NCBI RefSeq assembly: GCF_000315625.1
Contig: NW_005434549.1
Span: 20,516-69,995 of the forward strand
Reading direction: 5' to 3'
Length of the DNA stretch: 49,480 nt
Origin: Guillardia theta CCMP2712
Taxonomy: Eukaryota; Protista; Cryptophyta
The first letter of the stretch is position 1. Every line of letters begins with the position of its first letter. Positions 25,364-38,660 of the stretch are shown here, piece after piece. Position numbers and translations under genes: made by a program. Below the pieces are notes generated by a model. It searched no databases. It saw nothing but the letters and a program-made list of their open reading frames with translations, and was not told the origin of the DNA.

Positions 25364-28300
25364 TCAGGCTTGCGGGCTCACGCCGAACACACTCAGCCCT
25401 GCCTCCTCCCCCATGTGCTCTGCATCCTCCTCCGCGAAAAATTGCTCGCACCAGAGCTCCCCGTCCCTCTCAAGCTCCGACTCCTGTGTGCTCGATCCCT
25501 TGGCACTGCCTTCCCCTTGCTCGATCCCTCCTGCTCTCGCCCTCTTTGTCGGACGGCCTGTTGCTTCCGGACCTTGTGGGGCGATAGCGCCTTGCAAACC
25601 ACGAGCAGCTAGGAGACAAATCAGACTACCCGCAGGTCTCTTCCTCACCCTCACCTTTCCGTGGGTTCGCCAGAGACTCCGCACCCTCTGAGTTGGCAGC
25701 TATTTGATTCTCCTCTCCTTGCATGGCACCTGCTGGCATGGTGAGGACGCGAGGAATGATGGTGAGGAGGGAGTGACAAGGCAAGAGACAAAGAAGCACT
25801 GAGTTTGATCGTAACATCGGGAAGGAGGTTGTGGGTTGTGTCAGAGCAGGAAACTGAAGTCATCTGGATTGGAGGCAGAGAGAGGACAAGGCAGTATTTC
25901 CGAGGACGAGATTGAAGTTAAGAGCAACGAGAGGAGAGGGTTGGAGGACAAGATAGCGAGAACAAGCAGCCAAGGGTTCAAGGCAGGGAGGACGGACCCA
26001 TCATCGGAGGCTGCATCATGACGCCCATTGAGCCTGGGGCTTCAAGTCATTCGCTAATATCTCGTCTGCTCCTTTGGCTTGCTTACCCGTCACTGGCGCT
26101 GCTGCCCACTGCTCTTCACGAGGAAGCATCCCTTCTATCTCCAGCTGCATCTTGGCCATCTTGTCCAGCAGTCATTTCACCTCCAGTCATGTCCTTCTTT
26201 CTCACCTGCATGGCCTGGTGCATCAGCGATGCCGCGCTCGCGCTCTCTCCAGGCGCATTCGCTCGTGGCACTCGCTGCATCCTCCAGTTGCCTCCCCTCG
26301 GCACAGAGTCCGGCATGAAGTCTGCCATCCCGACCCCCCGGAAGTTGGAAGGAAGCGGCCCTTGTCCTCCGCTCCACTGAGGTTCCATGCTAGAATGCGC
26401 AGAGTTCTGCATTCCATTCATGGGCATCACCTGCTCTAAATGCATCAGCTGACAACTTCCCCGAGCCTGACGCCTCACCATCTCGTTCCTGGGCATCGGC
26501 GGCCCCTGCCATCTTGGCATCGGCTGCATCCGCATTGGCATACTTGCAGGCATGACATGGGGAGCAAGAGTCGTTGGCTCCACGTAAGTTAACCCAGCAT
26601 TCCCGCGAGGACCCCAGCTCGCGCTCCTGCCCTTATTGGCGGCATGACTCCTGCCGACCTCATTGGGGAGTGACTGGAGCGCATAGGAAGCGGAAACGTC
26701 TGCTTGTTCTGAGAGCAACATCAGCAACAACATGCACGTGTATCATAGCCCACCGGCTGGCGCACTGGCTTGTCTAGATGCTGACCACTGCATGAAATCC
26801 CGTCAACGGCAGTCAAATCAAGTTGCATAACCGTCAGCGTACCTGGTCAGGCTTGTGAGCCACTTCCAGCCCTTGACCTGCCCTGGTGATCTTCTTCCCA
26901 TTGTCCGAGCCGCTACGAGCAAGACCTGCCTGGCGTCACTCGCAGCTCAAGGAGGCATCGCTCGTTACCCGTTGGAGGCTGAGGCTCTTCATCCCTCATG
27001 CTCCGCTGGGTCGGTTGTGGTTCTTGCAGGAAGAGATCTTGCGCGGGCCCGGAAGTGTTGCGCTGGTCCACTTCGTCTACTTTGGCAGATTTGGATCCTT
27101 TGGACACGCCCACTGGTAGTCGGGAAGCAGCCATATGAATAGTTCTCCTCCAATCCTCTATCTCTTTCTTCCACTGCTCCTCCTTCTGCTGCGTCATCTG
27201 CTGCAGATCATTTTCCAGCCTGTCCATCTCCTCCTATTGCAAGTTTCACGAGACATTAATCAAGTGCTGCATCAACAACCTGATTCTGCATGAGAAACTT
27301 TTTCGTTTCAAGCTGCGATCGGCAAGATGTGAGCCTTTGCCGATGCACTTCTGCAAGTTTCTTTGTGGAAGCCAACTTCATGCTCATGAATTCCTCTCGC
27401 TCTTTTTCTGCAAGAAAAATCACCTACTGAGAAGTTACTTCATGGTACTAACGTATTTCTTTGAGCTTGAGGTCTTCCAGGTGTTCCACGGCCTGCCTTG
27501 TTCTTGTCTGATTGTTAGGGGCAGCGACCTATTATTGAATGAGCATGAAAGGCAGGTGCAAGTACTCTCCACAAAATACCCTTGGCGAAGTCGATGACTG
27601 CTTCACATCAACAATCCCTCGGACATCTGTACTTTTCTTGCTCCCAAGGTTGCCCTGAGAGAAATCTGGCCCTGCTGGAAGTAGATTTGCGGCAGGTTGT
27701 CCGGTGTTAGCTAGCTGAGAAGTGCTCTTTTTAGCAATGTCGATCTACAAGGAAGACGAATCAACAGGGGTCAAACTTGGTAAAACCAGGCGAACACACC
27801 TCTTTTGTCTCTGCACTGTTAGCGAGATGGTTGAGGGGTCCATTAGGCTGTCTTTATTCGGAGCACGGGAAAAAGAAAAAATTAAGTTTTCTTTTCCCCG
27901 GGTTTCAAAAAATCCGAGGTTGTCGAAGTCGCACTTTATTCGAGCATTTCAAATTTTCGAAAATTAAAAGGTTTCCCGCGCACCAGGGAAGACGCTCCAT
28001 GCAGGCACCAGCGAGACCAGGCAGCATGAAGCCCTTACAAGCCAAGCCTTATGTGAGGCTTATTGCATGTCTTACGTTCCTTGATGTGTCAGACGGAGGA
28101 CTACGGAAAATTGCAGAGTTGCATGTCTTACTTGAAGAAGCATATCCTAAGCATGTTCGTTATTTCCTGCAGAAGCATGGTAGTGAAATACCAGGTTTGA
28201 CAGAGGACTTGTTGTTGTACAAGTCAAGAAATCAGCCTTGGCCAGGATCCAGCATCATGGAGTTTTACCAATCTACTAAAGATTTGATAAACAACCGTTA

Positions 28301-31300
28301 CAATCCCGAATTCCTGGCTAATTGCAATCCTGACGGCTCTTTGCCGTCTGGACGAAGTCTGGAAGAACTTCGCATGGCAACAAAGGAGCAGTTGTGGAAT
28401 AAGCACCAACTCGAACTTGTCGCCAAGAATATGCAGTCATCGCCTTCCGAACCTCCGCCGCAGACTCCCGATCCCCAAGAAGCGCAGGAGAGTCTCGCCG
28501 AATCACCTGAATTGTTGGCAGAACAGAAAAAGAACGGAAGTGGGCGTAGAAAGCAGACATCAGTCATACCTTTCGATGTCACCAACCCTATTCACAGAGA
28601 TTGGACCCCATTAGGTTGGATCGCATGGCTGCACCTTGGATTGGGTTCTCCAGAACCTCATGATAAGTTTTCACTGAAACCTAGCGGAGGCGATGTACCT
28701 CCTGCACAGAATCAGATGACACCTGACTTCCATCAGCGTATGTCGAGAGGCAGATCTGAACAACGTCGGAAATTGCGAGAGAATAATCGTCCAGCACAAG
28801 AGGACTTGGGACGTGGAGTCACAGACCCACGTGCCTCAGATAGTCTTTCCAATGTTTTCATGGCTGCAGTGGATAGACTCATGTGTCATTATCGACAAAG
28901 TCATGAACGCACACAGATGGTCAAAGAACGTAACCAGATGATCCACGAACGTACACAGAAGATCAACAATCTGCAGATGCTCATGCAAATCACAGCTCCA
29001 GGTAGTTCCGACCACGCGCAGGCTAAGGCAGAACTCGTGCAACTTTTGAAGGGTACAGCTGACAATGACAACATCCCAAGTGTGGCTGAATGGGAATGTG
29101 CGTCTGGTACACCTGGCTCGTCATCGATACCACCTGCGTCTGTGACGAATTCCAGGAACATGGGCATTGCATCTCCTGTCTCATCTGTGGTTGCCACCCC
29201 TGTATCTCTGTCGGACGAACGTATCTTTACGAATGATGTGATTGGAACGACAGAGAATTGTTCTCCTCAATCACGTGTTCGTGCAAGGCCAATGGATTTG
29301 GACAGATTGTTCAAAAAAAACAGAACGAACAATGTGTAGAAGGTCACAACAGGAATTCCTGACGCAGATGGAAACATCCATCCAGTGTGAATGAAATGTT
29401 ACTGAATTCTCACTCGATTTTATTGCAGCATCACCTGGAACTCTCGTGCCGTCATTTCGCTGTCAGTATTCCACAGCGCCGATAGCAAGTGCTTCTTTAT
29501 AATGAAGAATCAATGCGCTTTGCAATTCCATCCAGCCACTTTGTATACTCGTAGTCAAATCTTGGTCATTCTCAAGAGGAAGTCGATGATGGGAAGACGA
29601 TGATACAATAGGTTGTCGAGGAAAGGACTCACGGTTATCCATACCCTCATATTCCTCATCCTCCGTGTTTTCATCAACCTGAACATCGGCGGCGTCTGCA
29701 CCATCCGTCGTCTGTGCATCATGCGCAAGGATGATGTTCTGAAGAATACAACAAGTTATGAACATGTTGTCCACTTCATCCTTGTACCAAAAGTTGCACG
29801 GTATTTTCACACACCGGAAGCGCGACTTCAATCTTCCAAAGAAGCATTCCACATCCTTCCGACATGATTCCAATGCTCGAGACCACTGTCGTCTATCAGG
29901 ATCCACTGTGTAAGGTAAAGGGCATTGTAACACCCTCCAACGGTGATAGCCTTGATCCACCATGATCCACAATCCTTTGTGAGTTTGTACACGACCTCCA
30001 CCAACATACAAGTCAAACTCTTCTTGCGCATAACGAGTTCCCTGATGCACGGATTGCAAGAATGAATAACAACATCCCAGCGTCTCAAGCGCAATCCGTG
30101 ATCCGCCTCCTCTAGTTTCCCGCCCGTGGCCTCCTGCTCGCTCCTACACTTGATATGCAATTGTTGGATATTTCTCTTTGCCTTTATACGACGGAAGATC
30201 TTGGGCTGGACACTTGTCCCAGGGAATATGTACACAGTCACATGACGCGATACATCCGGGAAAGCCTTTCTTGCGATACATCTCTGTGGTTTTGAAGATT
30301 TCATCCGGCGAGGTCGGGGGGTGGACATACTTGGGATACTGCTTTGCCATGTTTCGACAGAACATGTGGAAAAAGTTACGATTGGATGCCTCACATGCCC
30401 CATTCCCTTCACGGATATTGTTAAAACTGTATCCTCCTCCTAACACACGCAGAACACCAAGAATCATGAGTTCAAGGGACGGCATGGGCTGCCCACACAC
30501 GTTGGTGATCTGATCATGATACCATTTCTCTTCACGAGCCAGTTTGACAATGTCAAGATAAACAGGATATGGCAAACGAAAGCTACGCCTGAATTCTTTG
30601 GCAGCACGTGACGATGGATCAGCAAGGGAAGGATCTTCCAGGAGCACAGCCCACCTCGATGCTGCATAATTCCTTGGGAGCCGAGGCTGCTCCTCCACCC
30701 TTCGCTTCTTTCGAGCTCGTGGAAGAGGTTCAGAGTCATGCAGTGACTGAGCTTGTTGAGTGACAATGTAAAGTCTCATCAATTCAAGAAGACAAGCAAC
30801 CAGAAACAAGAACTCGGGGTCTCCAACATGAACATTGTCGCCGTCAATGTCCGATGGCGACGGCATGGCTTGGGCGGGAATTATCTTTTTCAAGAAATCC
30901 AGAGCGGGAAAAAGAAAGCGAAATTTCTCCCGAAATCCAGGTCTGGAAAAAGAAAACTTTCTTTTTCCCCCCGAATAAAGTGGGGGTTGGGAGAAGTTTT
31001 AGGGAAAAGTTTCATATTTTTCCCTAAAACACGTCCGAATAAAGACAGCCTTAGACTGCAACCAGCAAGTCATGAAAAAAAAACGGAGAGAAAAGCAGGA
31101 GGTACTTCGAGCTGTAAATCATTCCAAGAGCATTCAGAGTTGCTCAAGAAGAAGTAGTTATAATGCTGCTCACAGAGGGCTCTAATGATTTTTTCATCAT
31201 CAGGATTCGCCGCAGATTTTCGCAAATGAAGTTACCTCATTTCACTGCAACTGTCCTCGGGAACAAGTTTGTTTTGACTCCAGACATTTGGAAGTCTGCA

Positions 31301-32746
31301 TTCTGTATCAGATTCGTCTTGGCTCAAGGGCATGCTCTTTGACCTCATGACATTCAGTACAACATTGTTCTCTTCCTTCTCCAGTGCAATCGAGCACACC
31401 TACACATTTCAAACCATGAGGGATCTTGTTCTCTGATCCCCGCAACAAGTAACCTGTGGCAAAAGCTTGACAAGCGCATCTGCTAAAACCTCTCTCCATT
31501 TATCATTCTTGGGCGATTGCTATCACGCAAAGATAAAATGTTATTCTAGAATTATAACGACATGGTGTGCACCTGTAGTATTTCGTTTGCTACGTAAAAC
31601 AATGCCAAACATCTCCTTGCTTGACCAGTGGATACATTTTCCCTCAACGACTCCACATACATCTTCCCAAAATATGAGTTAAATGAAACATGGAACATGC
31701 GAAATCACCTTGTGAGCAGCACTTTCATTCACTGTACTCAGCTCCAGGAAATGTTTGGAAATATCAACAATCTGTCCAAAAGTCAGCAAGCTGTGGGGCA
31801 TGAGAGAAGAGAGCAGAGGACCTTGGAGTTTGAATAACTGTTTAAGCCCCGTATCGACTCCTTGAGCTTCTTCAGTATCTCCAAAGCATCCATCACGCCT
31901 TTCTTCAACTCCTCCTTCACCCTCCTTCAGTCTCCGCTGAACTGAAAATAAATCGCTAACCGGGAGATGTGTGAGATATCTAATCCAGGATATTCAAGGG
32001 GCTTTCTTGATCATTTTCGCACCAATACCGCGAATGTGTCACTGCAACTAACAATGTGGACCCTGCACTGTCTTGGTTCCAGCACCACGCTGCCAGAGAA
32101 TGCTTTTTTCCAAGTCGATTGGTTTCTGTGAACTTTGAACAAGTTCAACGGTATTGTCTCCACATTTCAAACCTATGAGTTCCTCCTGTGCCACATGACT
32201 GTCAGTCAGCCTGGTCGCACCGGCATGCAACTGTCCGAATATTTCACAAACGCTCTGTCTATGTTTCACCACCACCCCTCCACCACCACCTCAGGCAATG
32301 TTTTCGTTACCAAAAATGCGGTTTGAGAAAGACGACCGAGGTCACGGAACTACCAAGACTGTCCCTCGGAAAAGTCCGGGGTATCACGCTACGTCATTCT
32401 AGCCTCAACCTTTTCTAACATGGATTATTGTATGTGCCTGCTATGCATACTTTCCTTTCTTGATTGTTCCATTTTCATTCCATCTTTTAACAGGAGGGAC
32501 CATTCATCCACACTCACAAGTGACACTCCTTCTCTGCATACCCCTGAAGTCAGACTAGGAGTTCTTGGGTTCCAACCTCCACGTTTCTGCCAGTGCCCCC
32601 TTCTCCCCTCCCCCTCCTCCCCCTCCTCCCCCTCCTCCCCCTCCTCCGCCGCAACATTTCTCGCTCGTTCTACATGCTATCTTTGCTTACACACATGAGA
32701 TATCAACATCTACTTCCATTGCTGCCGCGTCAGCTTCTTCTCTCAT
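25364..32746 (-). CDS. Unknown multi-exon host gene (coiled-coil, Met/Pro-rich C-terminus) interrupted by the Harbinger element
   Basis: With the element removed, exons join in frame across canonical introns: YFFLSNSECSWNDLQLE | SNGPLNHLANSAETKE | IDIAKKSTSQLANTG. A later exon reads MDRLENDLQQMTQQKEEQWKKEIEDWRR. Outer limits are approximate. Confidence 0.5.
27999..29339 (+). CDS. Harbinger accessory ORF (putative DNA-binding partner), 446 aa, intronless
   Basis: Intact ORF between the TIRs, first ATG at 27999; LPSGRSLEE motif and a C-terminal coiled coil. A Myb/SANT assignment is expected for the family but not confirmed by eye. Confidence 0.75.
   Translation: MQAPARPGSMKPLQAKPYVRLIACLTFLDVSDGGLRKIAELHVLLEEAYPKHVRYFLQKHGSEIPGLTEDLLLYKSRNQPWPGSSIMEFYQSTKDLINNRYNPEFLANCNPDGSLPSGRSLEELRMATKEQLWNKHQLELVAKNMQSSPSEPPPQTPDPQEAQESLAESPELLAEQKKNGSGRRKQTSVIPFDVTNPIHRDWTPLGWIAWLHLGLGSPEPHDKFSLKPSGGDVPPAQNQMTPDFHQRMSRGRSEQRRKLRENNRPAQEDLGRGVTDPRASDSLSNVFMAAVDRLMCHYRQSHERTQMVKERNQMIHERTQKINNLQMLMQITAPGSSDHAQAKAELVQLLKGTADNDNIPSVAEWECASGTPGSSSIPPASVTNSRNMGIASPVSSVVATPVSLSDERIFTNDVIGTTENCSPQSRVRARPMDLDRLFKKNRTNNV
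29463..30866 (-). pseudogene. PIF/Harbinger DDE transposase with an in-frame TAG inside an 82-bp foreign patch
   Basis: Single frame of 468 codons: FRRSFRLP, GFPGCIASCDCVHIPW, KGKEKYPTIAYQV*, VDQGY and RKDVECFFGRLKSRF. The stop is at 30144-30146. Confidence 0.85.
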
Positions 32747-37099: not shown

Positions 37100-38660
37100 A
37101 GCCTTCATATCGGTGCACTCCAGACGTGAGGACATTCGTGATGAACTTTGTTATTCTTGATACAAATAATTTGGTGTTGGTTGCCAACATTGTTCAAACC
37201 CTCCGAGCCATTCCTCCCCTTCGATAACAACATCCCAGCGTCTCAAGCGCAATCCGTGATCCGCCTCCTCTAGTTTCCCGCCCGTGGCCTCCTGCTCGCT
37301 CCTACTGCTCTCCATGTTGGCCTTGGCAAGCAGCTTGTCTGCCTCGACTTCACGGCAGTTTCCTCTGTCCTTCCCTCTCGCCCTCTCTCCCACACAGTCA
37401 CATGACGCGATACATCCGGGAAAGCCTTTCTTGCGATACCACTGAGCGTCTCCAGCCTCTGGACCATCTTGGAGCAGCAAGTCAGCGATGAGTCAGGGGT
37501 TGACAGCATCCGATAGCCATATCAGAGAGTTTCGACTTGGCGCTAGCGCCGACCTTGTCCAGAAGCCAGGTCCTTGAAGTACTGTGGAGCATCGTTGACG
37601 ACGGCCTTCAGGCTGGTGGTTGGTTTGCTCCATTGTGCTATGCATGGACTGGCCCGATCTACAAGCAAGTGAATGGGCTGTCCGCTCCGAGCTCCGAGGA
37701 TGCTTGTCGGGGCGTTGAGGCCAAGCTCATCTCCTGGAGACGAATGGTAAGCACTCTACAGAGAGAAAGAGTTCAGTGGTGATGTGCCGTTTTTGACATA
37801 CGATTCTTAGTGGAACTCGACCACACCCTGTCTTTTCTCGAAGGCCGTTGGAGAGGTCATCAATGGCCACCTCCTCTCCTAGCTTCTTTGCTCGCTTGTT
37901 ACATCAGCAACGCAACGGAATCACTCTCTAAGCGCTGCTCAGGATGATATGATTCGATTCCGACCACCCTGGTTCTCTACTTCGTCTTGTCTGCTGGGTC
38001 GTCGTAACTTTCCCTCTCACCACTCCCTTCTCCTGTCCACGTCCTTCAACTATCCTCTCTGGGCCCTTCGCCGATTTGTTGTTTGTTCTCAGTAAAACTT
38101 GATCCGAGTCACTATCCGTAGATTCCTGATCTGCCACTGAGTCAACGTAGATGCTCAGGCATGTCCCATTCGTCAATCCCATCCCAATCCCCTTCCAAGT
38201 CACTGGTCGTTCCCTGGGGGATGGTGTGAAAACCACAATGGAGTTCTCCGCAGTGGGAGACACCATGGGTGTGCGGCAGATTGGACGGGGCCTCGGAAGG
38301 AGTTCCAGATTCGCTCTGTGATGAGAGAATGATGATCACTGCTGGCATGGCAGTGGATACGGGAGAGTGGGTATGGAGGTTTAAATATTCTCAAAACAAA
38401 TTGAAATGCATACCTTACACTATCACAAGCCGTCATGAAAGCCAATGACTTCATTTAACTCCAAACACAGTCATGTTCACCATGCTTCAAGGGCATGATT
38501 TTGTATTTACATGCTACTCAACGAACTGAGATTCAAATCTTGCATTATTGATCAGTACAATGAGAAGAGTCCTCTTCATCCACATGACAGTACACATAGA
38601 TTCGAAGTATCTCATCATTCAAATCGGTAGTCGCGCGCGAGCAAGGCATCAGTTCGCCAT
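37100..38660 (-). pseudogene. Possible degenerate gene remnant carrying the exchanged patches
   Basis: Short coding-like pieces (EVEADKLLAKANMESSRSEQEATGGKLEEAD; VDSVADQESTDSDSDQ) but no continuous frame. Confidence 0.3.

Follow-up and report, generated by a model that had tools for sequence, protein, structure and literature searches.

The question raised by this locus of the cryptophyte Guillardia theta CCMP2712 is whether a DNA transposon lodged in a coding exon could be spliced out of the message of its host gene. The locus lies within the window, a stretch of 49,480 nt (contig NW_005434549.1, positions 20,516 to 69,995), in which a PIF/Harbinger element of 3,205 bp occupies positions 27846-31050, with its transposase encoded on the minus strand, as is the host gene. 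The first-pass annotation had proposed that one terminal inverted repeat (TIR) of the element recreates an in-register splice acceptor, and that the element masks itself in the manner of an introner. We consider it fairly probable, instead, that this is an ordinary, and probably recent, gene-disrupting insertion into what is modelled as a coding exon of 48 nt in a putative CID-domain gene.

The element is delimited by two TIRs of 17 nt, found with a repeat finder and complementary at 17/17 positions (100%). The proximal TIR (GGCTGTCTTTATTCGGA) lies at 31034-31050 and the distal TIR at 27846-27862, and both are bordered by TAA on the minus strand (31051-31053 and 27843-27845), which constitutes the 3-bp target-site duplication (TSD) of the TWA type characteristic of PIF/Harbinger elements. 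A further copy in the genome, C14, is likewise flanked by TAA. The minus-strand frame of the element matches the Pfam families Plant_tran (PF04827) and DDE_Tnp_4 (PF13359), and partial copies 87-93% identical to it are present elsewhere in the genome. From its transposase domains, TSD and TIRs, the 3.2-kb insertion belongs to the PIF/Harbinger superfamily. Its resemblance to Tourist-type members extends to the TAA/TTA duplication, the short TIRs starting with GG, the presence of a second open reading frame (ORF) and the existence of derivatives with internal deletions, namely C4 and C14. The second ORF (27999-29339, plus strand, 446 aa from the first ATG) is open, convergent with the transposase gene and also conserved in the C45 copy. 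It has no match in Pfam or in the Atlas and so no recognisable domain, differing from other PIF/Harbinger elements in lacking a recognisable Myb/SANT/MADF domain; a second difference is that the transposase of the window copy has been inactivated by a foreign patch of 82 nt (see below). In addition, each end of the element (27866-27912 and 30905-30969) carries repeated GGGAAAAAGAAA motifs in the two orientations, which are probably binding sites for the proteins of the element. These subterminal motifs supply what had been described as a polypyrimidine tract ahead of the distal TIR.

On the minus strand, the model of the host gene starts with an ATG at 31893, extends to at least 26969 and has 11 exons, its 10 GT-AG introns keeping the frame open. 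These introns measure 50, 46, 53, 54, 54, 50, 55, 51, 45 and 46 nt (range 45-55, mean 50.4; n=10 modelled). An unconstrained enumeration of GT-AG paths returned 1,803 models and was uninformative until the intron-length range of the gene itself was imposed; once introns were held to 44-56 nt, three paths stayed in phase and free of stops, and each of them uses the splice from 31105 to 31056. This is intron 6, which is intact and 50 nt long (31056-31105), with its GT at 31105-31104 and its AG at 31057-31056. The exon that follows is cut by the element into its first 5 nt (TCTAA, 31051-31055) and its other 43 nt (27800-27842), after which comes a 55-nt intron (27799-27745); in the empty state the exon would read SNGPLNHLANSAETKE. 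The view that the insertion interrupts a 48-nt coding exon comes from our own gene model and is, we think, well motivated. As for the identity of the gene, exon 3 gave a match to the CID domain (PF04818) with an E value of 0.025 and 15.3 bits, below the cut-off of 23.9, the exons being searched singly. The same exon carries a motif of the type LxxFYVANExLQ, and the exons downstream seem to encode coiled coil; in appearance, the gene is RPRD1/Rtt103-like, of the CID-domain type. Downstream of the insertion, more than 210 codons are open and in phase, with three intact short introns.

Much of the arithmetic on which the proposed splice was based could be reproduced. The host acceptor (..ttgcAG) is followed by TC and then by the TAA at which the element is inserted, and on the minus strand the distal TIR reads ..aaagacAG/CC-TAA, with its AG (27849-27848) likewise 2 nt ahead of the TSD. 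A host GT is also present to serve as donor; it lies at 31105-31104, 10 nt away from the position 31115 given to it by the first-pass annotation. Joining this donor to the TIR acceptor would yield ..CAGCTCGAA/CCTAATGGACCC (a slash marks a junction), which restores the frame with one change, LQLE-PNGP as compared with LQLE-SNGP in the empty site. The caveats that accompanied the proposal were also borne out, as a competing AAG lies 4 nt upstream of the TIR acceptor (AG at 27853-27852), the old acceptor is intact and the local introns are short (45-55 nt). According to the junction script, use of the competing AG would result in a frameshift and an immediate stop.

The in-register AG can be accounted for by the TIR sequence. 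Since the TIR begins with GGCT, the reverse complement of which is AGCC, every copy end reads AGCC and places an AG 2 nt from the element's end. In copies with the variant start GGCTATC, the AG is kept as TAG/CC. The AG is thus built into the TIR and is no special adaptation. The sole coincidence is that the TAA target lies 2 nt after an acceptor; with 14 TAA/TTA sites in the 1,213 nt of modelled exons, this is expected in about 1 in 14 cases given an exonic hit in the host gene, and the coincidence was noticed post hoc. In the few flanks that could be compared, there was no sign of an extended target-site preference including AG.

Which splice sites the cell would use we infer from the surrounding sequence. 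The favoured sequence of events is that a PIF/Harbinger element inserted at a TAA which by chance was located 2 nt into the 48-nt coding exon. Because the upstream 50-nt intron, including its T-run and CAG, is untouched, it would by default be spliced at its old acceptor. The message would then run into the element and meet a TAA after 18 codons (..LQLE-SKAVFIRTCFREKYETFP-stop), and the outcome would be either a truncated product containing only the CID domain or a decayed transcript.

Four routes by which the element might nevertheless be removed from the message have to be set against this reading; together, they perhaps account for a minor share of the probability, well short of that given to simple disruption. 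The route proposed in the first-pass annotation runs from the donor at 31105 to the CAG of the distal TIR at 27848, skipping the old acceptor, and would give ..GCTCGAA/CCTAATGG.. with replacement of serine by proline. Its arithmetic is exact, the downstream exons are intact, a subterminal motif rich in T and C lies about 20-33 nt upstream of the CAG, and pairing of the TIRs would loop out the element. However, the intron removed would be 3,258 nt long, or about 65-fold the length that introns have in the host gene (all 45-55 nt), and its acceptor would have to beat an intact one that the same donor reaches after only 50 nt. The AG 4 nt upstream, use of which breaks the frame, is a further obstacle; in all 10 host introns, the 15 nt upstream of the acceptor are free of AG. 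Moreover, purines predominate in the 19 nt that lead up to the TIR AG, and the branch-like CTTAAT lies about 35 nt from it, whereas the CTSAY-like motifs of the host introns, read by eye, are 13-22 nt from their AG. In host-sense RNA the ends of the element are predicted to form a long duplex (-82.3 kcal/mol, versus -43.3 +/- 6.2 for shuffled sequences), in the stem of which the TIR AG would be buried, although the same duplex would also bring distant sites together. Thus, this splice is arithmetically valid, finds no support beyond that arithmetic and is disfavoured by the sequence context; we regard it as very unlikely. Skipping of the interrupted exon altogether, from 31105 to the acceptor at 27745, appears unlikely to the same degree. 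The 48 nt are a multiple of three, such that 16 residues would be lost in frame from a poorly conserved linker with no Pfam match and the join LQLE/IDIAKK would be open, but this route needs an intron of 3,361 nt and has to bypass the intact proximal acceptor.

The two other routes would depend on the element itself. The proximal TIR contains a GT at 31046-31045 (GGCT/GTCTTT), which could act as a donor within the TIR. Were the old intron spliced as usual and this GT then joined to the distal AG at 27848 (..TCTAAGGCT/CCTAATGG..), there would be no competition with the old intron, and 4 + 2 + 3 = 9 nt (S-KAP-NG) would be left without a stop and in frame at any insertion phase. Codon-adding introners are documented, those of Aureococcus adding 12 nt (PMC9860276), and autonomous TIR elements can generate introns (PMC12130899). 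On the other hand, a 3,199-nt intron would be needed in a short-intron gene, both sites would lie inside the TIR duplex, and the GT is lost in the ends of the GGCTATC variant and hence is no conserved feature of the family, which moreover has not spread in genes. We therefore rate this route as still less probable than exon skipping. The more general idea that the Harbinger TIR (GGCT/GT..AC AG/CC) is inherently intron-ready, with a 9-nt footprint at any phase, that pairing of the TIRs would draw its two sites together, and that the window copy is a nascent 3.2-kb intron among the roughly 50-nt introns of this genome, in effect an introner at copy number one, is in our judgement just as doubtful. 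Finally, removal might not involve the spliceosome at all. In SOS splicing, described for DNA transposons in mRNAs of Caenorhabditis elegans and human, paired inverted ends direct the excision and the junctions are independent of GT-AG (PMC12779559). The predicted extended duplex of the ends would provide the pairing that this mechanism uses, and RtcB ligase genes are present in the genome. Against it, the mechanism is known only in animals, the perfect repeat here is only 17 bp, the in-frame fraction of its products is reported to be low (PMC12779559), and the CAAP1 domain was not found in the genome in a search that had no positive control. Of the four routes, we give this one the least credence.

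Several points weigh against simple disruption of the gene. Three of the routes, as the junction script shows, preserve the frame on paper, and the paired TIRs might draw remote sites close to each other. Our own model of the host gene was derived from the sequence. Furthermore, a gene still in use would account for the more than 210 open, phased codons downstream just as a recent insertion would.

The size and distribution of the family also bear on the introner proposal. A DNA search of the whole assembly (87.1 Mb, 669 contigs) revealed about six copies or fragments, including the window copy. C45 is a degraded, near-full copy 87-88% identical to the window copy, C133 is truncated with its transposase frame intact, C4 and C14 represent a common deletion derivative (89-93% identical), and C116 is a solo end. 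A scan of the assembly for the TIR pattern found 6 exact and 2 one-mismatch matches, matches with two mismatches being at the level of the reversed-pattern control. Neither the DNA search nor the pattern scan gave evidence of a MITE (miniature inverted-repeat transposable element) swarm or of spread of the family in genes. It had been asked whether other copies or MITEs sit in exons; with about six copies in an 87-Mb assembly, no MITEs and no genic proliferation, the introner-like character ascribed to the element was not upheld. Within the family, C14 (18914-20747) and C4 (497303-498827) share internal deletions, both missing element positions 830-983 and 1395-2718, and it can therefore be deduced that a non-autonomous derivative of about 1.8 kb has transposed at least once. 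The C14 copy adjoins repeats of the CCCTAAA type, which start 8 nt from its end. In the second ORF of C45 (locus 297-2204), an internal stretch of about 100 codons is duplicated in tandem (PDFHQRMSRSRSEQR..SVA occurring twice), and the frame is still open for 636 codons.

The window copy had been described as a full-length transposon with two ORFs, which holds for its size and not for its coding capacity. Its transposase reading frame (29463-30866, minus strand, ATG at 30866), intronless across the family, is interrupted by a TAG in frame at 30146-30144. In C133, the transposase is a single uninterrupted frame of 503 codons that matches DDE_Tnp_4 over positions 3-158 of 158 (E 5.5e-25), whereas the window copy, although in the same frame as C133 throughout, matches the profile only over positions 72-158. 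An alternative in which the window transposase consists of two exons and an intron was ruled out by the uninterrupted frame of C133. The TAG and the missing part of the catalytic core are due to an 82-nt block (30066-30147), which seems to be a patch converted from window 37224-37305, 7.16 kb distant, to which it is 100% identical. This block is foreign to the transposase, since C45 and C133 have native sequence at that place, and it replaces a native segment of 28 residues (CVDHSGKALSITRGFPGSFNDKMIARYD in C133) carrying the conserved GFPG..ND motif, that is, the PG..ND motif of the DDE catalytic core; by our reading, this motif may carry a catalytic Asp. A second block of 48 nt (30232-30279) is identical to 37392-37439, in register with the first, and in this case it is transposase sequence that resides in the other locus. 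Both blocks are 100% identical and collinear between the two loci, and the approximately 85 nt between them differ. The paired blocks look like the result of a recent two-way conversion or template-switch event. The window copy thus cannot make transposase and, not being coding-competent, does not qualify as an autonomous element. The 82-nt block is part of a repeat; no fewer than three further loci (including C106:238911-238978, C106:232284-232351 and C6:940180-940223) carry it at about 90% identity, and two of these are 6.6 kb apart on contig C106. The repeat reads as E/A/G/R-rich coding repeats.

Both flanks of the insertion are single copy in the assembly, with no empty site or paralogue there. 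The 55-aa exon just downstream (27580-27744) had 0 matches in a representative library of 1.84 billion proteins, exact look-ups of four long ORFs of the window gave no match, and metagenome scans gave 0 matches each, whether for the spliced-junction pattern (empty, serine-to-proline and +9 forms) or for the empty site as genomic sequence. Since at least 4 other CID-domain loci exist in the genome (C53:430263-430658, C87:170497-170859, C37:268037-268318 and C7:684653-684766), loss of the host gene may be tolerable. Two of these loci fall within long frames of 459 and 449 codons that lack introns, unlike the intron-dense host gene.

DNA transposons can be spliced from exons via cryptic terminal sites, as is the case for maize Ds/dSpm and C. 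elegans Tc1. The present element resembles these in having sites in or near its terminal repeats that would permit imprecise, at times in-frame, removal from the message; those cases are based on cDNA and come from organisms that handle kilobase introns, whereas here the removal is a possibility read from the DNA. Introners, the transposons that create introns (PMC9860276, PMC12130899), offer another parallel, as this is an element with TIRs and a TSD that lies in a coding exon and has GT and AG available at its ends, and the 9-nt footprint of a TIR-to-TIR splice recalls the 12 nt added by the Aureococcus introners (PMC9860276). In contrast, introners occur as many near-identical copies annotated as spliced introns, mostly short and non-autonomous, while here a single exonic 3.2-kb copy from a family of about six is found among host introns of about 50 nt, with putative splice sites read from the sequence. 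The Harbinger family is accordingly not a multi-copy family forming the introns of many genes. With SOS splicing it shares a DNA transposon with pairing inverted ends within an mRNA, but that animal system needs AKAP17A, CAAP1 and RTCB (PMC12779559), of which RtcB was found here.

Even if one of the removal routes were true, the phenomenon would be of known kinds, namely introners, splicing of DNA transposons at cryptic terminal sites, or SOS splicing. The analysis also yielded corrected coordinates, a model of the host gene and the recognition that the transposase of the window copy is dead. As it stands, the locus represents a well-resolved gene-disrupting Harbinger insertion, the apparent design of which is explained by the TIR sequence. 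Should the element in fact be cleanly spliced, it would offer an uncommon glimpse of how a transposon begins to turn into an intron, here a large element in an alga with short introns.

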